From the sequence record OQ718158.1: a stretch of 64,000 nt of DNA. One strand, written 5' to 3'. Made by a program: the position numbers and the translations under genes. Positions within the stretch are counted from its first letter, which is position 1. The number at the start of each line of letters is the position of its first letter. Below, piece after piece: positions 7,165 to 56,911 of the stretch. The notes below the pieces were generated by a model. The model worked only from the letters and a program-made list of their open reading frames with translations. It was not told the origin of the DNA and did not search any database.

Positions 7165-7428
7165 ATGAATATCCAAGATAGATTGCAATTGTTGCACACA
7201 CTTGAAGAAGCTGCTTTTGAACTTGTTAATAAAATTGCACAAGAACTCCCAAAAGGAACCAAAGTTCGTGTTCGTGAAATGGATTATTTAACGGGAAAAA
7301 TTGATGAAAAAGTTCTAACAGTGATCAAAGTAACATACTATGAATCAGAGTTATCAATTCAATGTAATTCAGATAATGGTTACGTTTCCTACTATGGTAC
7401 AGATGTAGATATAGAGGTAATAAAATGA
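7165..7428 (+). CDS. small hypothetical protein (helix + SH3/KOW-like)
   Basis: Start reassigned to ATG 7165; PKGTKVRV. Confidence 0.7.
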   Translation: MNIQDRLQLLHTLEEAAFELVNKIAQELPKGTKVRVREMDYLTGKIDEKVLTVIKVTYYESELSIQCNSDNGYVSYYGTDVDIEVIK

Positions 7429-8567
7429 CCCTTTTACAAATATATGAAGATTTAATGCACTTATGTAATACCCGTGATGCTTTCTTTTATGTGGATCATA
7501 AAAGTCCTGCTGGTGGAACATATCGTGTATTCAGTTATCGTCTAGCATCATATACCGATTTCATGCAACCCAATGCATTAGAAACCCGTGGTTCTATGTG
7601 GGAAATTGATGAAGACGGTGATATGATTCGTTGTGCTGCTCGTACTATGAAAAAGTTCTTCAATGCTTACGAAAATCCTGCTACAATGTTCCCTGCTGAT
7701 ACCTCATTCGATGACATTGCAGTAGTGATGCCTAAGTTGGATGGTTCAGTAATCAGTACTTACCGTGATAATGATGGTGTAATTCGTTGTAAATCACATA
7801 CTGCATTGTATTCAGACCATGCGATTAACAGTACTCGTCTTCTCAATGAGAACCAAAATTTGTATCAATACATTGACGAAGCAGACCGTTTGGGCTATAC
7901 TGTTAATCTGGAGTATACAAGTCCAGAGTACCGTATTGTATTACCATATCAGGTTGAACAATTATTTGTACTAAACGTTCGCAATCGTAAGAGTGGTGAA
8001 CTATTATGTGGTTCTGCATTACGTAATAAGTTCCCATGCCTTGCACAGTACAGTACTAACATGACAGGTAAAGATATTCATTACACTTTCCCTGCTCGTG
8101 CTACATTCAAAGAAAGTGTTGAAGAAGTTAAGAAAATGCTTGACATTGAAGGTTTTGTGTGCATCCTAAATAATGGTACAATGTGCAAAATCAAAACCGA
8201 CTGGTATTGTTCTTTGCATTTAACGAAAGACAGTATTATAATCGATTCCCATTTATATGAAGCTGTATTAAATGGTTCGAGTGATGATTTAAAACAGTTG
8301 TTCAGTACTGACGAATATGCTACCCAAAAGATATTAAGAATGGAACAACTAGTCTTTTCGTGCTATAATGCTTTACAAGATGAAGTTGAAAGCTTCGTCA
8401 AGGAACACAAGCACTTGGAGCGAAAGGAATTCGCTAAGAAGGTTCAGGAGTGTTTAACTAATGAACTGAATCGTCAGGGCTTGGCCTTTGCAATGTACAA
8501 CAATAAGAAAGTCGATTACAAAGAGACTCTTATTAAGTACATGAAAATTGTACTAAAGGATTTTTAG
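7425..8567 (+). CDS. rnlA: RNA ligase 1 (T4 Rnl1-like)
   Basis: Motif I KLDGS, ETRG, NLEYTSPEYRIVLPY, EGFV, KIKTDWY. Confidence 0.92.
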   Translation: MTLLQIYEDLMHLCNTRDAFFYVDHKSPAGGTYRVFSYRLASYTDFMQPNALETRGSMWEIDEDGDMIRCAARTMKKFFNAYENPATMFPADTSFDDIAVVMPKLDGSVISTYRDNDGVIRCKSHTALYSDHAINSTRLLNENQNLYQYIDEADRLGYTVNLEYTSPEYRIVLPYQVEQLFVLNVRNRKSGELLCGSALRNKFPCLAQYSTNMTGKDIHYTFPARATFKESVEEVKKMLDIEGFVCILNNGTMCKIKTDWYCSLHLTKDSIIIDSHLYEAVLNGSSDDLKQLFSTDEYATQKILRMEQLVFSCYNALQDEVESFVKEHKHLERKEFAKKVQECLTNELNRQGLAFAMYNNKKVDYKETLIKYMKIVLKDF

Positions 8568-9389: not shown

Positions 9390-10322
9390 ATGCCAACTAT
9401 CACACTAACAGTTGGATTGCCTGGGTGTGGTAAAACTACATGGGCAGTGCAAGAGATTAAAAAAGCCAAATCCAAGACTATCAACATCAACCGTGATGAT
9501 ATTCGTGAATCTATGGCTGGGTCACATGATGCTTACAAATTCAACGATGCTAATGAGCAGTACGTAACTAATTTACAGTTCAGTGCAGCAAATTCAGCCG
9601 CAGAGAATGGTTGGAACATCATCATATCCGATACGAACCTTAAACAACATTTCCGTAATCTATGGAAAGTATGGGCTATAGATAATGGTTATGATTACAA
9701 AGAAAAGAATTTCTATGATGATTTTGTACCTAATGAAGACCGTGGTGCAGATGTTCATGAATTCTTTAAGATTAAAGAGTTCGTAAAACTTTGTAAGAAA
9801 TATAACCTCCAGCGTGAGCGTTCAGTACAAGATAATATCATTGACACTATGGCAGATACGTACTATTATAGTAAGGCATTACACATTGGTTACTATGGTA
9901 ATTCACGAGAAGCTGCTATTATCGTTGATATCGACGGTACTCTTGCTCATAAATGGGGACGTAACCCGTTCGATGAAAGTACTGTACTCCAGGATACACC
10001 AGACGAAGAAGTTATTTTGTCGATTATCGCAGAAGCAGTTTTTCATAAACGCAAGATTATCGTCATGAGTGGGCGTACTGAAGGGTGTCGTGCTGATACC
10101 GAACAGTGGCTTAAGAATTGGGGTGTTCCTTACGATGCGTTGTTTATGCGAGGCATCGATGATAAACGTCCTGATGATGTTGTTAAATTCGACCTGTACA
10201 TGAAAAATGTGGTTGATCATTACGATGTTAAAAAGGTTTATGATGACCGCAATCAAGTTGTTTTTATGTGGCGTAAGCTACTTGGGTTGAAAGTTTTCCA
10301 AGTGGCAGAAGGAAATTTCTAA
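9390..10322 (+). CDS. pseT: polynucleotide 5'-kinase/3'-phosphatase
   Basis: P-loop GLPGCGKT, NRDDIR, HAD motif DIDGT, SGR, DDR. Confidence 0.93.
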   Translation: MPTITLTVGLPGCGKTTWAVQEIKKAKSKTININRDDIRESMAGSHDAYKFNDANEQYVTNLQFSAANSAAENGWNIIISDTNLKQHFRNLWKVWAIDNGYDYKEKNFYDDFVPNEDRGADVHEFFKIKEFVKLCKKYNLQRERSVQDNIIDTMADTYYYSKALHIGYYGNSREAAIIVDIDGTLAHKWGRNPFDESTVLQDTPDEEVILSIIAEAVFHKRKIIVMSGRTEGCRADTEQWLKNWGVPYDALFMRGIDDKRPDDVVKFDLYMKNVVDHYDVKKVYDDRNQVVFMWRKLLGLKVFQVAEGNF

Positions 10323-22759: not shown

Positions 22760-23016
22760 CTTTCTTGATTTTAGGTATCCCATTTGCAGTTGTGATTCTT
22801 GTACTTTTAGTGATGATGGTATTAAATGATAATACTACTCCACCAGTGATGCGTAATCATGAAGTACGATTTTCAGCACAAAACAACAAGTACTACATTG
22901 TAAATTGTTTAACTTGTAAAGAGTATAAAGTAACTGGTAAATTTGGTTTTACCATTTATTATAAAGACCGTGTTGAAGCTGACATGATTTGTCAGAAACT
23001 TAATACGGTAGAATAA
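22756..23016 (+). CDS. small membrane-anchored protein
   Basis: N-terminal hydrophobic helix. Confidence 0.65.
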   Translation: MTFLILGIPFAVVILVLLVMMVLNDNTTPPVMRNHEVRFSAQNNKYYIVNCLTCKEYKVTGKFGFTIYYKDRVEADMICQKLNTVE

Positions 23017-23046
23017 AAAAAAAAGGAGCCATAAGGCTCCTTTTTC
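23013..23046 (+). terminator. intrinsic terminator (possibly bidirectional)
   Basis: A-run + GGAGCC-ataa-GGCTCC + T-run. Confidence 0.88.
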
Positions 23047-23137
23047 TTTTGTTAGTACACAACTTGTTTGAATTTCAGGAAAACTCTTAGATCCAACAAC
23101 GAGTTCAGTACTACCACGTTATTTGTTGACAAAAGCA

Positions 23138-23165
23138 TAGACATTATACATTAGTGTGATATAAT
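23138..23165 (+). promoter_or_regulatory. RGACA-N13-TGATATAAT promoter
   Basis: TAGACA-16 nt-TATAAT with TG. Confidence 0.75.
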
Positions 23166-23300
23166 CATTCAAAAGAAGGTAAAAAGGTGGGATGATTCTG
23201 CGAGGGAATTTGTGAAGTGATATAAAAAACAATTTGACTTAAGTTAAATCTTCCTATAATATTATTTATGTAATCAACAATCAACTAAGAGGGTTAACCA

Positions 23301-23909
23301 GTGGTACGATTATGTAAAGAAATCATCCAATCTATTATTATTATTTTCTTAATTAACTTTCCTGCAAGTGCAGGTGTTGAAAGAAAAAGTATCATTAGAT
23401 ATGATGAATCTAAACAGACAGTTCAGTTCATTTCAACTTTAACTGAAAATACTGTAAACCGTTTGATGGTTTTTAGAGAAACACACCCATTTGACACTAT
23501 CATCATTACGTCACCTGGTGGTGATTTTGATGCGGGAGTGGCACTAGGAAATTTTGTCAATGATAACAATTTAACAATTATTGTTGAAAGATATTGTAAT
23601 TCTTCTTGCACTATCGCATTCTTTAGTGCTAATATAGAAAACAGATACATGATGAAGGACTCAATTCTAGGTCTACATAATGTGTCAATCGAAAGTAAAG
23701 CACGAAATAGTGATGACACATACATATCAGTTCGCCAAATGACTATTTTTGCTGAACAGCTATCAACTAAGGTTGGTGTTCTATTTGCGTTATATGCAGC
23801 GAATGGTATTCCTCCAGAATTGTTAGTGGAGGTTAGTAAGGTTCGTGGTAATGAAGTTGTGAGACTTACACCAGATCAGTTGCTCGAATTAGGTAGTATC
23901 ATTCATTAG
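23301..23909 (+). CDS. exported ClpP/crotonase-fold protein
   Basis: Signal-like N-terminus; ITSPGGD, CNSSC, LGLH. Confidence 0.7.
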   Translation: MVRLCKEIIQSIIIIFLINFPASAGVERKSIIRYDESKQTVQFISTLTENTVNRLMVFRETHPFDTIIITSPGGDFDAGVALGNFVNDNNLTIIVERYCNSSCTIAFFSANIENRYMMKDSILGLHNVSIESKARNSDDTYISVRQMTIFAEQLSTKVGVLFALYAANGIPPELLVEVSKVRGNEVVRLTPDQLLELGSIIH

Positions 23910-24001
23910 TATTAGATACAAAATAATAATATTATAATAAGAGGATGATAAAGTGGTACATCCTTTGTTATAAGTTCACATACACTAGGAGTGTATAAAC
24001 T

Positions 24002-24262
24002 ATGACAAATTTACAAAACTTAACATCTCTTGTTTTTTATGCAACAACTATTGTATATTGCATTACATTAGTTTTAACATGTTTCATCTATAAAGACTAC
24101 AAACGTGGTTTTATGGATTCCAGTACACACAAATTTGCATCCAAGTTAGAAGCAGGAATTTACTATGTTCTATCAATTTCTTATGGAGCATGTTTACTTA
24201 CACTAGGGTTGCTGATATACTGGTTGTATACGGCACTTTTTGCACAAGGAGTTATTTCATGA
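24002..24262 (+). CDS. small membrane protein
   Basis: Two hydrophobic helices; AGGAG RBS. Confidence 0.7.
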   Translation: MTNLQNLTSLVFYATTIVYCITLVLTCFIYKDYKRGFMDSSTHKFASKLEAGIYYVLSISYGACLLTLGLLIYWLYTALFAQGVIS

Positions 24263-24852
24263 CTTGTATTATCGCTCACACAAATGGCACATCTTCCTTC
24301 ATCGCTGGTGATAAATTAGGAAGCAATGGTTTCACTAAAGCAGTTCAAACTGAGCCTAAAGTGTTTGAGAAAGAGTTCATTAAACTCAATGAGGATGGTC
24401 TTTCTCGCACTAAAGAAGTAATGGCGTTGGGGTATACTACCTCGTTCCGCATGGGACAGTTGTTGAATTACAACCTAACTCTACCAGAACAAGTTGCAGG
24501 GGAAACCTTTTCACAGTATCTAGTACTGAAAGTTATTCCTATCATTCGTCAAATGTTTAAAGATGAATGGGGTGCTCGTGATGCATCACAAGATGTTGGT
24601 GGTGGTCAGTTCATTATTCTTCATAATCATACGATTTATGAAGTTCAAGAAGACTTTTCAGTACTGCAACCTAAAACACAAATTACTGCTGTCGGAAGTG
24701 GGACTTATCATGCAATTGCATCCATGTCAGCGTATATTGAAGTTCAAGAAGAAACCAATGTTCAGTTACATGAACGTGTTGAGTCTATTTTCAAAATTGT
24801 TAGTGATAATGTAACAAGTGTTAGTCCAGAGTTTGATATTTTGAAATACTGA
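24259..24852 (+). CDS. HslV/proteasome-like Ntn peptidase
   Basis: AAGGAG + ATG 24259 gives MTCIIA (N-terminal Thr); AGD, AVGSG. Confidence 0.8.
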   Translation: MTCIIAHTNGTSSFIAGDKLGSNGFTKAVQTEPKVFEKEFIKLNEDGLSRTKEVMALGYTTSFRMGQLLNYNLTLPEQVAGETFSQYLVLKVIPIIRQMFKDEWGARDASQDVGGGQFIILHNHTIYEVQEDFSVLQPKTQITAVGSGTYHAIASMSAYIEVQEETNVQLHERVESIFKIVSDNVTSVSPEFDILKY

Positions 24853-24874
24853 GAATAATAATTATAAAGAGAGA

Positions 24875-25075
24875 GTGTATCTGATGGCATACATAATTTA
24901 CGAGTGGATTTTTTGTTTCATAGTTGTGTTTATTTGTGTGGTGTTATACAATCACACTAAATGTTTATACCGAGAATTCAGGAATGGTAATAAACATGGA
25001 CACAATAAGTGGATGTATGTCTATCATATTGCTATCATTGTATTTTTAGTATTAAACTTGATACTTTTTATATAA
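24875..25075 (+). CDS. small membrane protein
   Basis: Two hydrophobic segments. Confidence 0.55.
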   Translation: MYLMAYIIYEWIFCFIVVFICVVLYNHTKCLYREFRNGNKHGHNKWMYVYHIAIIVFLVLNLILFI

Positions 25076-25084
25076 GGAGTAAAT

Positions 25085-25837
25085 GTGATATCAGATAAAT
25101 TTATACAAAATGCTGGGAACAAAAGATTACTTATAATTTCAGGGGCAGGTCTTTCAGTTGAGAGCGGGATGGAACCATTCCGCTTTGATGATGGGTTGTG
25201 GGACAATTTCAAAATTAATGATGTTTGTAACATTGCACGACTTAGTTCTAAGTATCATGTAGTTCATTCATTTTATAATACATTGCGTGTAAAATTAGGT
25301 GAATGTCATCCTAATGAAATGCATTACTTTATTAAATCATTAGAAGATTTGTATGGTGATTGTTTTTTACACATGACTTCTAATATGGATGATCTATATA
25401 CTAGAATTGGTGGAACCGAACTCAAACTACACGGCAATTTATGTGAAGTAATTGAGAACTTTTCTATTAATACCGATGATTACAATGTCATTAATTGTGG
25501 TTATGAACCATATATTCCTAAAGCTGATGTTTTTGCAAAACCAAATGTAGTGATGATTGGTGAGTATCATCGCTACGTTGATGGGGTACGTCTCCCCATT
25601 TATGAAGAACGAAATGAAGTGTTGAAAAGTCTCACAGAAAATGATACAGTTGTAGTTATTGGAAGTAGTGATACAGTACTGGTATGGTCCAGACTAGCTG
25701 GTGCACTTCCATGCTATAGTGTAAATGTTAACATCCGAAAAAATGATAATGATTTTCTTTTTAATGAGAAGGTCATCAAACCTGCGACGAAAGCAATTCC
25801 ACAGATTGAAACTATAATTAAGGAACGAATGCGATGA
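25085..25837 (+). CDS. Sir2/CobB-family NAD-dependent enzyme
   Basis: SGAGLSVESG, SNMD, LHGNL, KPNVV, IGSS. Confidence 0.88.
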   Translation: MISDKFIQNAGNKRLLIISGAGLSVESGMEPFRFDDGLWDNFKINDVCNIARLSSKYHVVHSFYNTLRVKLGECHPNEMHYFIKSLEDLYGDCFLHMTSNMDDLYTRIGGTELKLHGNLCEVIENFSINTDDYNVINCGYEPYIPKADVFAKPNVVMIGEYHRYVDGVRLPIYEERNEVLKSLTENDTVVVIGSSDTVLVWSRLAGALPCYSVNVNIRKNDNDFLFNEKVIKPATKAIPQIETIIKERMR

Positions 25838-26385
25838 GTAAAGCGGAAGTACCACTGGGGCAAATGGGGAAACGTGCAAATTTTGTATTCTGTTTCTTTT
25901 ATGCAAAAGAATGTACCCCATACGCTGGTTATGAACTAAATGATATCCCAGTGGTTAACTTAGTACTCCTACAAGTGCGTTGGGATGGATTGTTGGGTGC
26001 ATGTGGTGGAACAGTTGAAAGTACTGATAAGTCATTAGAAGATGCGTTACAGCGTGAAGTTCAAGAAGAAATGAACTATATCATTGACAAAAGTCGCCTG
26101 TCTCCATTAAAATCACTTGAATTGTTTCCAGAGGGACACTCACATAGCTATAGTTATGAAATGACTTATGCTGAACTTAAAAAACTTCGTGATAATTATG
26201 CATATGGCAAACATGCTAGTGCAGAGGTGGCTGGTGTAAATTTATGTCACATCTCTCGTTATTCGAAGGGACAAAATCGAGAAGCAGGATATAATAATCT
26301 TATGACACAGAACTTCATCGGAACTGCGAAACAAGAATTAGAGTATCTTGTACAAAAAGAAAACTTACTAATCAGCTATCTATAG
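25834..26385 (+). CDS. Nudix hydrolase, NUDT16/U8-decapping-like
   Basis: LLQVRWDGLLGACGGTVESTDKSLEDALQREVQEEM resembles the NUDT16 Nudix-box region. Confidence 0.8.
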   Translation: MSKAEVPLGQMGKRANFVFCFFYAKECTPYAGYELNDIPVVNLVLLQVRWDGLLGACGGTVESTDKSLEDALQREVQEEMNYIIDKSRLSPLKSLELFPEGHSHSYSYEMTYAELKKLRDNYAYGKHASAEVAGVNLCHISRYSKGQNREAGYNNLMTQNFIGTAKQELEYLVQKENLLISYL

Positions 26386-26394
26386 GAGTTTAAA

Positions 26395-26715
26395 ATGTCG
26401 TACTCAATGTTCTTGGATGATATTCGTGATTATCAAAAATATTATCCTGACCAAGAGATGGTATTGTGTCGTGACTACGAAAGTGCATGTGAATACGTAA
26501 TCAAAAATGGAATTCCAGCATTTGTCTCATTTGACCATGACTTGGGTGACTTGAGTACAGATGAGAAAACGGGATACACTTTTGCCAAATTTCTAATTGA
26601 TTATATGTTTGAGCATAATATTAAAGAACCATTTAAATACTATGTACATAGTAGTAATCCAGTAGGGAAAGTTAATATTGAAACTTACTTAACTAATGGA
26701 TTTAATGCACTATGA
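26395..26715 (+). CDS. cyclic-phosphate-processing receiver-domain protein
   Basis: FLDD, SFDHDLG, TGY, VHSSNPVG. Confidence 0.8.
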   Translation: MSYSMFLDDIRDYQKYYPDQEMVLCRDYESACEYVIKNGIPAFVSFDHDLGDLSTDEKTGYTFAKFLIDYMFEHNIKEPFKYYVHSSNPVGKVNIETYLTNGFNAL

Positions 26716-27014
26716 TTTCAACACATATCAAGAGTCTTATTTGCACAACACTGTTAGGTATAGGTGTTCTATGGTTCAGTTCATATCATGAGAACACTAA
26801 ACGTTACAATATTCATTACAATGCAGCGACTGTAACAGGATTAGGTCAATGTAATGAAAATAAATGCTCATTTACTTATAAAACCAGTACTGGTGAAGTT
26901 CGTAATGGGTTATCAAGAGATCCAGTATCAATTGGTCAACTAGTTTACCAGGAATGCTGGGAGGAAAAGGCTCGTGGTTCAAGATGTTATGTTGAATACG
27001 AACCGAGCATGTAA
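26712..27014 (+). CDS. membrane-anchored hypothetical protein
   Basis: N-terminal TM; four periplasmic-side Cys. Confidence 0.65.
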   Translation: MISTHIKSLICTTLLGIGVLWFSSYHENTKRYNIHYNAATVTGLGQCNENKCSFTYKTSTGEVRNGLSRDPVSIGQLVYQECWEEKARGSRCYVEYEPSM

Positions 27015-27075
27015 TATTCCGAGTCACTAACCATTAGTCGAGTACAAGGATGTACTCATAACTCAAGGATGTTTT

Positions 27076-28515
27076 ATGAAAAAATATACAATTGACACAA
27101 ACGTACTACTATCTGATCCAAATGCTACCATTGCTTTTGATGGAGCAGCTATCATTCTACCGTTCACAGTACTTGAAGAATTGGATTCAATTAAAAGTCG
27201 TAATGTGGATGTTTCCCGTGATGCTCGTGTTGCAATCCGTAACATTGAAGCTATCCTTTCTGATGCATCACATGAAGAAATTAGTAGTACTGGTGTTAAT
27301 ATTGCTGATGTTCATACTAATATGAGTCCTGAAAGCAAATTGTTTGTTATTACAAGCGAAGAAGCTGAAGCACTAATTCGTACTGCTGGTAACGAAGAGA
27401 AAGTTCAAACTCTTCTAAAAAGCACAGTACCAGATGATAAAATCATTTTAGTAGCATTAGCAACTGATTCAGTACTGGTTACCCGTGATATCAATATGCG
27501 TATCAAGGCTCTAAGCTACGGGGTGGAAGTTCAAGATTATCGTCATGATATCGTGATTGGTGATAGTGATTTGATTCACATTGGTCAACATCACCTTGAC
27601 CTACATTTCTGGGATGTGTATAGTAATCTGACTGATGTATCTATTCAGTCTGAACAAGTTGGTCGTCGTTTGTACCACTACATTCCAAAAAGCTTGATTG
27701 AACATATCATGCCACAAAATATTTGCATCGGTGATTACCTATATGATAATGCTGATGTTCTATTTGTGTACGAAGGTCAATCTGCAATTGAAGAAGATGA
27801 TGGTACTTTAACACCAGAAGATATTCTTGTATTCCAAGATATTGGACAATCTGTTGCTCTACGTGCTAAAGTGTGGGATATTAAGGCTAAGAATATTCAA
27901 CAAGCACTAGCAATCAACAGTATCCTAGATCCTGATGTTCATCTAACAGTACTGTTAGGTTCAGCAGGTACTGGTAAAACACTAATCACCATTGCAACTG
28001 CACTAGAGTTAGTTCTAGAGAAGAAAAAATACGACCGTATCATCTTCTCCAAAACACAAGATTCCCAATTCGAAGACATTGGTTTCTTGCCTGGTTCTGA
28101 AGCAGAGAAAGTGATTCCTTTCTGTGGTGCGGCAATCGATGCGTTGGAATTCCTACACAAAGATGATGCTAACCCACAAGGCAGTATCGAAGAAATCATG
28201 AAACGCAATGTTATCCAATTCAAAGCACTAAACTTCGTTCGTGGTCGTTCTTTCACAAATACTATCCTAGTAGTTGATGAATTCCAGAACATCACACCTG
28301 CTCAGGCAAAAACAATCTTGACTCGTGCAGGGATGAACTGTAAAGTGGTTATTATGGGCAACTTGAGCCAGATTGACTCTAAATTCATTAGTCCAGTAAA
28401 CAGCGGCCTAACTTATGTTACCGAGAAGTTCAAGAACTGGGACGGCTGTCGTGTAATCGAACTAGAAGGTGTCGTTCGTTCACCACTAGCAGAATTTGCA
28501 GAAGAAAATATGTAA
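27076..28515 (+). CDS. phoH: PhoH-like ATPase with N-terminal PIN domain
   Basis: IDTNVLL, ELD, DDKII (PIN); GSAGTGKT, FVRGRSF, VDEFQN. Confidence 0.93.
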   Translation: MKKYTIDTNVLLSDPNATIAFDGAAIILPFTVLEELDSIKSRNVDVSRDARVAIRNIEAILSDASHEEISSTGVNIADVHTNMSPESKLFVITSEEAEALIRTAGNEEKVQTLLKSTVPDDKIILVALATDSVLVTRDINMRIKALSYGVEVQDYRHDIVIGDSDLIHIGQHHLDLHFWDVYSNLTDVSIQSEQVGRRLYHYIPKSLIEHIMPQNICIGDYLYDNADVLFVYEGQSAIEEDDGTLTPEDILVFQDIGQSVALRAKVWDIKAKNIQQALAINSILDPDVHLTVLLGSAGTGKTLITIATALELVLEKKKYDRIIFSKTQDSQFEDIGFLPGSEAEKVIPFCGAAIDALEFLHKDDANPQGSIEEIMKRNVIQFKALNFVRGRSFTNTILVVDEFQNITPAQAKTILTRAGMNCKVVIMGNLSQIDSKFISPVNSGLTYVTEKFKNWDGCRVIELEGVVRSPLAEFAEENM

Positions 28516-28523
28516 TAATGTGT

Positions 28524-28551
28524 GGGACATTCGTCCCATACATGATATAAT
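28524..28551 (+). promoter_or_regulatory. RGACA-N13-TGATATAAT promoter overlapping a hairpin
   Basis: GGGACA-16 nt-TATAAT; ATGTGTGGGAC/GTCCCATACAT inverted repeat. Confidence 0.75.
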
Positions 28552-28581
28552 AATATTGTTAACAACAAAGGAGAAATACTC

Positions 28582-28779
28582 ATGGCAAAGCAACCTAAGA
28601 AAAAAGAACCAGTAGCAAAAGTTAAGAAAGTTAAAGTTATTCAATCTAAAGAACAACGTAATTACGAACTACGTAAAGCAGAAACCCTATCAGGTCTTCA
28701 AGCTCTACGTAAACAAGGTGTTCTAACTCGTGCTCAATACCGTGAGATCGTAGCACAAAAAGGTTATTGGTCCATTTGA
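28582..28779 (+). CDS. small basic protein
   Basis: AAGGAG RBS; Lys-rich N-terminus. Confidence 0.75.
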   Translation: MAKQPKKKEPVAKVKKVKVIQSKEQRNYELRKAETLSGLQALRKQGVLTRAQYREIVAQKGYWSI

Positions 28780-28873
28780 GGCAATAAACTGGAGTTCATG
28801 ATAAATACTTTCATAAGAATAATAATACTTTTTATTAATTTAAAAAGAACTCCATGTGTTATTTCAGTTTTTC

Positions 28874-28900
28874 ATCCCTGTCTTTTGGCAGGGATTTTTT
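28874..28900 (+). terminator. intrinsic terminator
   Basis: ATCCCTGTC-tttt-GGCAGGGAT + T-run. Confidence 0.85.
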
Positions 28901-28995
28901 CTTTCTAGATATTGACAAAAGGATTAAACCATGAGAACATGTAGTAAAGGAAGAATGACATTCCATTAGGTTAGTTTAACTTAAAGGAGAAATAT

Positions 28996-29553
28996 ATGTT
29001 TTTTGACCAAACATTTACGTTGTACCATGATTCAGGTAAAGTTGAGATTATTGATAATCTGTTAGAGTACATTGCGGAACATGACGGTATAGACCGTTTC
29101 CACAGTAAGATGAAATTCGATTTAGCTGAATTCAACAAAAAGAATCGTGAAACATTTTGGAAGAACCGTTTCTATTACGAAATGTATCCAGAAAAGTTCG
29201 TAGGTTATTATCTTTGTACTGAAAAAGGATTACTTGTATCTCCTGATTTACTTATGGGTGAATACATGATACTCTATAATGAGTACTGGGAACATAAGCG
29301 TAATGCTCGTGACACTGAATGGCGACACAAGCGTTCGTATATGTACAAACATAACCACTCCAGATACAAACGTCCTAAGACCCAACAAGAGCGTCGTATG
29401 GCTTGTGCAGTACTGAAGGATGAGGGGGAACCTGAAATACGTGGAAGACGTAAGATGCGTTCATTGCCATCGTATTGGGATGATATCAGAACAAGACACA
29501 GTACTGGCTGGAAATACAGTACAAAACGTAAACATCAATACAAAGGGAGCTAA
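28996..29553 (+). CDS. conserved phage hypothetical protein with basic C-terminus
   Basis: AAGGAG RBS; PKTQQERR...LPSYWDD...WK. Confidence 0.8.
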   Translation: MFFDQTFTLYHDSGKVEIIDNLLEYIAEHDGIDRFHSKMKFDLAEFNKKNRETFWKNRFYYEMYPEKFVGYYLCTEKGLLVSPDLLMGEYMILYNEYWEHKRNARDTEWRHKRSYMYKHNHSRYKRPKTQQERRMACAVLKDEGEPEIRGRRKMRSLPSYWDDIRTRHSTGWKYSTKRKHQYKGS

Positions 29554-56500: not shown

Positions 56501-56911
56501 ATGATTGAAATGGAAGGAACTCTGGTGTATGATCCAGATCGTGGCACTATGAAAAAGAAGAAGGACTTCTGGTTAGTACTGCAACTTCCATTACAGTTGG
56601 TTCGATACTACCAGTACTTCATCAGAACTGACTTACATATTGATATTAAAGACCCACAATGGGGAGCACATGTCAGTATCGTTCGTGGTGAAGTGCCACC
56701 AAATCCAGAGTACTGGAAAAAGTACGATGGTATGAAAGTTAAGATTAAGTTCGAACCTTTCATCGAAGAAGTAAAAGACAATAAGAAACCTGGGTCATTC
56801 TTTATCATAGAGTTTGAAGATGATTTCATTGCACAAATTCGTGATGAACTTGGTTTAGCATCTAAATATTTCAAATATCACATCACCATTGGTAGAACAT
56901 ACTACGATTAA
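56501..56911 (+). CDS. 2H phosphoesterase-like protein
   Basis: Two H-x-(S/T)-hydrophobic motifs: GAHVSIV and KYHITIG. Confidence 0.72.
   Translation: MIEMEGTLVYDPDRGTMKKKKDFWLVLQLPLQLVRYYQYFIRTDLHIDIKDPQWGAHVSIVRGEVPPNPEYWKKYDGMKVKIKFEPFIEEVKDNKKPGSFFIIEFEDDFIAQIRDELGLASKYFKYHITIGRTYYD

Follow-up and report, generated by a model that had tools for sequence, protein, structure and literature searches.

The window analysed here, a 64-kb (64,000-nucleotide) stretch of sequence record OQ718158.1, comes from an Asteriusvirus jumbo coliphage and contains on its plus strand a block of five genes encoding, in order, a sirtuin (Sir2), a NUDT16-type Nudix hydrolase, a 'cyclic-phosphate processing' receiver-like domain protein (cREC), a small membrane protein and a PIN-PhoH protein. 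Over window positions 24800-27100, identity was 100% to Escherichia phage vB_Ec-M-J (OQ718158.1), 99% to several sister phages and 79% to phages of the PBECO4/121Q type. The sirtuin (25085..25837, 250 residues) was assigned to a phage-specific zinc-less clade and matched PF02146 (1.3e-19) and phrog_2162 (1e-73). The Nudix hydrolase (25834..26385, 183 residues) was assigned to the NUDT16/X29 family by PF22327 (Nudt16-like; 67.7 bits, cut-off 27), and cREC (26395..26715, 106 residues) by PF20274 (83.4 bits, cut-off 27). The membrane protein (26712..27014, 100 residues) matched phrog_14661 (2.6e-38). The PIN-PhoH gene (27076..28515) encodes a PhoH2-type protein, a predicted RNA helicase and PIN endoribonuclease, and matched PF13638 (PIN_4, 4.5e-20) and PF02562 (PhoH, 8.5e-45). 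An earlier model-made reading of the letters alone (hereafter the sequence-only reading) had proposed the first three open reading frames with these coordinates and domains, and the three Pfam matches agree with it. The membrane-protein and PIN-PhoH genes of the conserved block were missed by that reading.

The Sir2 stop and the Nudix start share ATGA at 25834-25837. The Nudix gene closes with a TAG whose last base is 26385, followed by a 9-nucleotide spacer (26386-26394) and the cREC ATG; both junctions were read in the sequence as originally described. The cREC stop and the membrane-protein start likewise share ATGA (26712-26715), and the PIN-PhoH gene starts after a 61-nucleotide gap downstream of the membrane-protein gene, in which hairpins were not significant (z = -1.98). 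The Sir2 start was placed at the GTG at 25085. A Shine-Dalgarno-like AAGGAG (25074..25079, plus strand, read from the sequence) lies 5 nucleotides 5' of this codon and homologues of 250-256 residues aligned from residue 1, so the GTG already chosen by the sequence-only reading was taken as the real start. The GenBank start (OQ718158.1, EcMJ_211) falls at window position 25169 and loses the GAGLS NAD-binding motif. Junction spacing was assessed by a hand count from the GenBank annotation over 26 kb around the block: about 29 of 46 junctions overlapped or were separated by 10 nucleotides or fewer, and 9 of the 46 were 4-nucleotide overlaps. Because tight junctions are the norm in this phage genome, the tight coupling of Sir2, Nudix and cREC says little when taken alone, and their linkage rests on conservation across phages and on gene fusion, not on spacing.

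The order Sir2, Nudix, cREC, membrane protein, PIN-PhoH was kept in Klebsiella phage RaK2, Serratia phage BF and Cronobacter phage GAP32, and also in Xanthomonas phage XbC2 and Salmonella phage Munch. It thus spans four named genera of Rak2-like phages at 44-64% protein identity (44-58% between the block and BF) with differing flanks. In BF, GAP32, XbC2 and the metagenomic protein P0163, a short linker connects Nudix and cREC within a single polypeptide. The sequence-only reading had made its case depend on linkage of the three genes in relatives, and this conserved order, with fusion in some phages, supplies it. Among metagenomic phages, contig L020 (Nudix 48% identical) carries Sir2-X-Nudix-cREC-PIN/PhoH, and the more distant L012 (Nudix 40% identical) keeps Nudix-cREC-PIN/PhoH. 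A 248-residue protein encoded upstream of the L012 Nudix was considered as a sirtuin on account of its Sir2-like length and was rejected, having neither Sir2 similarity nor a Pfam match. PIN-PhoH lay downstream of cREC in every relative inspected and was the most constant neighbour of Nudix-cREC. Since L012 retains these genes without Sir2, the firm core of the block is Nudix-cREC-PIN/PhoH, and the sirtuin is a frequent partner whose link is weaker. The membrane protein occupies the same position in RaK2, BF, GAP32, XbC2 and Munch, is absent from the block versions of L012 and L020, and is an addition specific to the enterobacterial clade. This definition of core and accessory genes is one of the details that the present comparison adds.

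The Nudix protein was compared with known families by sequence and by structure. In phmmer searches it matched human NUDT16 (9e-12) and Xenopus X29 (1.5e-10), with other Nudix families no better than 0.02. An AlphaFold (AF2) model was obtained at a mean predicted local distance difference test score (pLDDT) of 95.8 and was searched with Foldseek, where ranks 1-38 were all NUDT16, X29, TIRR or syndesmos (E 1e-14 to 3e-11). The model superposed on NUDT16, X29 and TIRR with TM scores of 0.80-0.82 and a root-mean-square deviation (rmsd) of 2.8 A (E 1e-14); the next family, NUDT9 (1.5e-7), was seven orders of magnitude behind. The NUDT16/X29 assignment is therefore solid and is a new detail for this neighbourhood, and the structure search upholds the subfamily call of the sequence-only reading. 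Human NUDT16 binds metal and phosphate through Arg50, Asp52, Glu76, Glu79, Glu80 and Glu136 (PMC4485890). The equivalents in the phage protein (R49, D51, E75, E78, E79, E131) show little or no variation among 50 homologues. Two hypoxanthine-contact positions are altered by alignment, His24 to Tyr23 and Gln170 to Glu168, the latter Glu being near-invariant in the microbial and phage NUDT16-like family. Because these positions differ, the base preference of the phage enzyme cannot be assumed from that of human NUDT16.

Human NUDT16 and Xenopus X29 perform RNA decapping, deNADding, (d)IDP hydrolysis and removal of protein ADP-ribosylation to leave phosphoribose. NUDT16 has been described as the most promiscuous mammalian enzyme on RNA caps, cleaving m7G, NAD, FAD and dpCoA caps as well as free NAD (PMC7337524). 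The phage protein shares with these enzymes the fold, the Nudix box and the phosphate and metal ligands, and differs from them in being about 26% identical, in its Tyr and Glu at the positions of His24 and Gln170, and in being phage-encoded and coupled or fused to cREC; its own activity is predicted. The type is rare in phages, as had been suspected: it was found in 75 of 50,697 records, all but a few of them Rak2-like jumbo phages, and a library of 1.84 billion representatives yielded only 223 matching proteins (E 0.001 or better). Metagenomic NUDT16-like domains (P0236, P0260, P0214, P0305) were found fused to Ham1/ITPase, HD_4 and cytidylyltransferase-like (NMNAT-type) domains, and for this reason the microbial family is not regarded as functionally uniform.

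These observations bear on the simplest account of the locus, in which there is no functional module: synteny would follow from shared ancestry in a dense, collinear genome, and the Nudix would be a house-cleaning enzyme, a (d)IDP/ITP diphosphatase that goes with the genes for nucleotide metabolism around it. In favour of this are the IDPase activity of human NUDT16 (PMC4485890), the metagenomic protein that joins a NUDT16-like domain to Ham1/ITPase, the nearby genes for dCMP deaminases and for an anaerobic ribonucleotide reductase, and the hand count, which showed how usual tight junctions are here. Mere ancestry fits poorly, however, with Nudix-cREC fusion in several genera, with retention of the block while flanks differ between genera, and with a Sir2-cREC pairing that recurs in unrelated rV5-like phages. 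A house-cleaning role likewise fits poorly with replacement of the base-contacting Gln170 by a near-invariant Glu. This account was judged very improbable.

The cREC protein was modelled with AF2 (pLDDT 96) as a four-stranded, truncated REC fold. The top 50 matches of the model in VIA-align were all response-regulator receiver domains (Z 8.0-9.7; rmsd 2.2-3.2 over 77-96 residues). Foldseek returned weak receiver-domain matches only, so that the fold is shown by VIA-align, and no sequence match was found in the PDB, even by profile search. Ten positions were invariant in 30 homologues (D8, D9, R11, D47, H48, D49, H85, S86, N88, P89), forming a pocket that corresponds to the receiver acidic pocket with two added histidines. 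The domain was named and predicted to open cyclic phosphates by Iyer et al. (2021, PMC7824862), and it was stated to be experimentally uncharacterised and to occur in up to 18% of jumbo phages by Iyer et al. (2022, PMC9503650). Its cyclic-phosphate phosphodiesterase activity is a prediction of these two papers.

The membrane protein (26712-27014) has one N-terminal hydrophobic helix and a conserved C-terminal domain, and carries four cysteines (C47, C52, C82, C92) that were invariant in the homologue alignment. In PIN-PhoH, the PIN_4 match covers residues 4-156 and the PhoH match residues 269-473. Its best NCBIfam model was 'RNA 5'-3' helicase PhoH2', at 155.6 and thus below the equivalog cut-off of 680.

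The sirtuin keeps the NAD-binding GAGxS motif (GAGLS; G20, G22, S27) and, by alignment with homologues, N100, D102 and the catalytic H116. All four zinc-ribbon cysteines are missing, no CxxC pairs are present, and the region reads EVIENFS...GYEPYIP across the clade. The same cysteines are lost in the whole Rak2-like clade and in rV5-, T5- and KVP40-type phage sirtuins, and are present in CobB and the metagenomic relative P0040. The zinc-less state of the phage clade is a new detail. The CobB acyl-pocket motif YxxR reads YNTLR in the phage protein. Its best solved relative was E. coli CobB (2e-21); in NCBIfam it scored 85-89 bits against CobB equivalog cut-offs of 318-320, about a quarter, and it was 44% identical to the Serratia phage BF sirtuin. 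Compared with class III sirtuins such as E. coli CobB and SIRT5, the phage protein therefore shares the Rossmann core and catalytic residues, but has no zinc-ribbon cysteines, an altered YxxR motif, scores far below ortholog cut-offs and a different gene context. A divergent form was noted in RaK2-type sirtuins (L002:3258-3992; P0023, P0025), in which GNG replaces GAG, the NAD-loop Phe-Arg is lost and the catalytic His is kept; these may be inactive or altered enzymes.

The sirtuin was also considered as a CobB-like protein lysine deacylase that would reprogram host or phage proteins, with Nudix-cREC disposing of the O-acyl-ADP-ribose produced. CobB-type deacylases are its closest solved and named relatives (2e-21; NCBIfam), and it has kept both the GAGxS motif and the catalytic His, Asn and Asp. 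Hydrolysis of O-acetyl-ADP-ribose is a known activity of some Nudix enzymes, among them yeast Ysa1 and NUDT5. Set against this are the loss across the phage clade of the four zinc-ribbon cysteines that CobB and P0040 keep, the change of the acyl-recognition motif to YNTLR, the scores at about a quarter of the CobB equivalog cut-offs, and recurrent neighbours that are RNA-repair and not protein-modifying enzymes. A deacylase role was considered quite improbable.

The block corresponds to a published neighbourhood. A type 1 sirtuin-centred neighbourhood of jumbo phages, with Serratia phage BF as exemplar, was predicted to be an NAD+-utilising RNA-repair system (Iyer, Burroughs, Anantharaman and Aravind, 2022, Viruses 14:1977, PMC9503650). 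In that proposal the sirtuin removes RNA 2'-phosphates like KptA, and other enzymes open cyclic phosphates or degrade ADP-ribose 1'',2''-cyclic phosphate (ADPr>P). The Asteriusvirus block has the same sirtuin clade, Nudix, cREC and PIN protein in the same order. It differs from the BF exemplar in that Nudix and cREC are separate (9-nucleotide spacer) and not fused, and in lacking a 2H gene beside the block. The main text of PMC9503650 speaks neither of the Cys-rich membrane protein nor of the PhoH half of the PIN protein (PhoH, 0 occurrences), and the NUDT16 affiliation of the Nudix is not noted there (0 occurrences). The neighbourhood was thus already published as a prediction in 2022, and nothing categorically new is described here. 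A paper on NARP3 was set aside as unrelated to the block.

Several phages place relatives of the block genes next to RNA-repair enzymes. In the rV5-like phage Gotham, genes for an Rnl1-type ligase, cREC and a sirtuin are contiguous on one strand beside a polynucleotide kinase/3'-phosphatase. A T5-like phage encodes a HAD 'Swiss-army-knife' RNA-repair phosphatase one gene after its sirtuin. In freshwater phage contigs (L027:4000-5544, L028:2053-3597), an Rnl2-type ligase gene comes immediately downstream of cREC, Rnl1 and a kinase are encoded 3 kb away, and both Sir2 and Nudix are missing. Within the window itself, a T4 Rnl1-type RNA ligase (7425..8567, plus strand; PF09511, PF20819 and annotation), a candidate sealing partner, and a T4 Pnkp-type polynucleotide kinase/3'-phosphatase (9390..10322, plus strand; PF13671, PF25109 HAD_PNKP at 1.8e-43 and annotation), the canonical end-healing enzyme, are encoded 15-17 kb upstream of the block. 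The Rnl2-type ligase family (PF09414) was absent from the vB_Ec-M-J genome, KptA/Tpt1 (PF01885) was absent from four Rak2-like genomes, and no tRNA genes were found in the window.

On the basis of this anatomy, conservation, fusion, active-site preservation and recurring association with RNA ligases, the block is read, with a probability of about 0.45, as an NAD+-dependent module for RNA-end processing and repair. The sequence-only reading had suggested a module for NAD/ADP-ribose-derived caps or adducts or for by-products of RNA ligation; its general direction coincides with the published prediction and with the RNA-ligase contexts, and the substrates, in that reading as in this one, are inferred throughout. 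The decapping family of the Nudix, the constancy of PIN-PhoH2 as a neighbour, the absence of KptA/Tpt1 and the presence of Rnl1 and Pnkp in the window also speak for this reading. After cleavage of tRNA or mRNA by host nucleases, the block would serve as a backup to the T4-type enzymes Pnkp and Rnl1. The zinc-less sirtuin would remove an RNA 2'-phosphate at the expense of NAD+, as KptA/Tpt1 does, and cREC would open 2',3'-cyclic phosphate ends, ADP-ribose 1'',2''-cyclic phosphate, or both. The Nudix, being of the RNA-binding, cap-cleaving NUDT16 kind, would cleave an ADP-ribose-containing by-product or adduct to AMP; alternatively, it could cut back an NDP-X 5' end to a 5'-monophosphate fit for ligation. 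Unwinding and trimming of the RNA would fall to PIN-PhoH2.

Two known systems were used for comparison. The KptA/Tpt1 pathway, with its 2H and Macro components, removes the RNA 2'-phosphate with NAD+ and then breaks down ADP-ribose 1'',2''-cyclic phosphate. The logic proposed for the block is the same, an NAD+-consuming transferase followed by cyclic-phosphate opening and degradation of the ADP-ribose product, but the proteins are not homologous: a sirtuin would stand in for the ART-fold Tpt1, the REC-fold cREC for 2H and the Nudix for Macro, with activities assigned by prediction. T4 tRNA repair by Pnkp and Rnl1, whose two enzymes this phage also encodes, is by contrast independent of NAD, uses kinase and HAD phosphatase chemistry that leaves no 2'-phosphate, and involves no sirtuin, Nudix or cREC.

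A number of points weigh against the RNA-repair reading. Since the T4-type Pnkp/Rnl1 route leaves no 2'-phosphate, the need for a Tpt1-like step is hypothetical. To our knowledge, a sirtuin acting as an RNA 2'-phosphotransferase is without precedent, and a literature search found no experimental work on this phage-sirtuin clade, on cREC or on a phage NUDT16-like enzyme. No Sir2 gene was found within 5 kb upstream of the L012 Nudix-cREC-PIN/PhoH genes. NUDT16-family proteins also act on small molecules (IDP), and relatives are fused to the Ham1/ITPase, HD and NMNAT-like domains described above. Signs of expression were slight: RNA-library contigs from three studies lie, at low depth, over parts of 23000-29000 (the longest stretch of interest being a 978-nucleotide contig that spans cREC, the membrane-protein gene and the start of PhoH) and show presence without proving transcription; in a single raw-read RNA-seq run, no reads fell on this stretch. 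The contigs are thus a weak hint of transcription and not proof. Lastly, the genes for NAD metabolism and anti-CBASS function found around the block in relatives point equally to NAD economy and counter-defence.

A stronger form of the RNA-repair reading was also weighed. In it, Nudix-cREC would heal RNA ends in the manner of Pnkp, as a second type of enzyme for this task, the sirtuin would be the first known sirtuin RNA 2'-phosphotransferase, and with Rnl1 these would make up a full yeast- or plant-style tRNA ligation pathway from unrelated folds. The NUDT16-type domain would turn capped, NDP-X or adenylylated 5' ends into 5'-monophosphates, and cREC would turn a 2',3'-cyclic phosphate into a 3'-OH/2'-phosphate end. 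The role of the sirtuin had been put forward in 2022; that of the Nudix at the 5' end is one that we infer here. In this complete form the proposal was judged unlikely.

The genes around the block in relatives were examined next to those of the Asteriusvirus phage. NAMPT lies just upstream of the block in BF, GAP32, RaK2, Munch and L020, and in L020 the upstream region also holds a NadM-like NMNAT-Nudix; NAMPT and NadM-like NMNAT-Nudix are enzymes of the known phage NAD+ reconstitution pathway. The '2H' gene beside the sirtuin in BF (L003:2504-2947, annotated 'RNA ligase') and in L020 (3366-3815) is a homologue of Acb1, the anti-CBASS phosphodiesterase, the BF protein scoring 56 bits against the Acb1 family (cut-off 27). 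The Acb1 identity of this neighbouring gene is likewise a new detail. The Acb1-like gene was absent from RaK2. In the vB_Ec-M-J genome, searches for 2H (PF13563), NAPRTase/NAMPT (PF04095) and homologues of the BF NAMPT and BF Acb1-like proteins were negative, with BF, GAP32 and RaK2 positive as controls. Since the block persists in a phage without NAMPT and Acb1, it does not depend on either.

This context raises the possibility that the block serves counter-defence and NAD economy, with small molecules as its targets. Signals or toxins that host TIR, Sir2 or RES systems derive from ADP-ribose (gcADPR isomers, ADPr-1''P, ADPr>P) would be destroyed by Nudix-cREC, which may also recycle ADP-ribose to AMP and ribose phosphate for NAD+ re-synthesis. 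The part of the sirtuin would be to adjust NAD+/nicotinamide or to modify a host factor. The position of the block directly downstream of NAMPT in five phages, the NadM-like gene in L020 and the Acb1 homologues in BF and L020 all favour such a role. Phage Nudix and Macro domains have been argued to counter mainly soluble ADP-ribose derivatives (PMC9503650), and NUDT16 hydrolyses free NAD (PMC7337524) and has been crystallised with ADP-ribose (PDB 5w6x). Yet the present Asteriusvirus phage, whether through loss or from the outset, is without NAMPT and the Acb1 gene and still keeps the block; cREC adjoins RNA ligases in phages without Sir2 and Nudix; an NAD-consuming sirtuin is odd in an NAD-saving module; and PIN-PhoH2 is an RNA enzyme. 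A small-molecule role was held to be rather unlikely. The two readings overlap biologically, because RNA repair itself counters host anticodon nucleases. The sequence-only reading had pointed to Thoeris, DSR and DarTG in particular. Nothing was found that ties the module specifically to these systems, and the sirtuin matched no PADLOC defence model at E 0.01 or better, including ThsA, DSR1/2, Sir2-HerA and pAgo-Sir2; Nudix and cREC likewise had no meaningful PADLOC match. What probability remains beyond the readings set out here was assigned to something else.

If the published RNA-repair prediction is true, sirtuins would gain a new class of reaction, the removal of RNA 2'-phosphates, the widespread cREC domain would gain a function, and phages would be shown to meet the RNA-cutting defences of their hosts by an NAD-dependent route. 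With E. coli as host and with proteins that are small and fold well (pLDDT about 96 for two), the block is a practical test system and an attractive biochemical target.

Transcription signals around the block were sought by consensus scan only. A strong promoter-like site was located at 23138-23165, downstream of a terminator-like hairpin (23020..23045, plus strand), and a second terminator-like hairpin (28874..28895, plus strand) follows PIN-PhoH and a 65-residue open reading frame. These signals suggest one putative transcription unit, which would also hold two protease-like genes upstream of Sir2 (23301-24852), one for a ClpP-like protease (phrog_26024), the other for an HslV-like peptidase (phrog_1040). 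An unannotated open reading frame of 66 residues (24875-25075), with two hydrophobic segments, separates the HslV-like gene from Sir2. This spot holds differing small genes in relatives, among them a gene for a phage zinc-binding domain protein in BF.

The only 2H-like open reading frame of the window encodes 136 residues (56501-56911) with two H-x-S/T motifs and lies 30 kb away from the block. It scored 23.8 bits against the 2H 'Swiss-army-knife' RNA-repair phosphoesterase model, below the cut-off of 27, and was unrelated to the BF Acb1-like gene. It may encode a cyclic phosphodiesterase partner of Rnl1/Pnkp.

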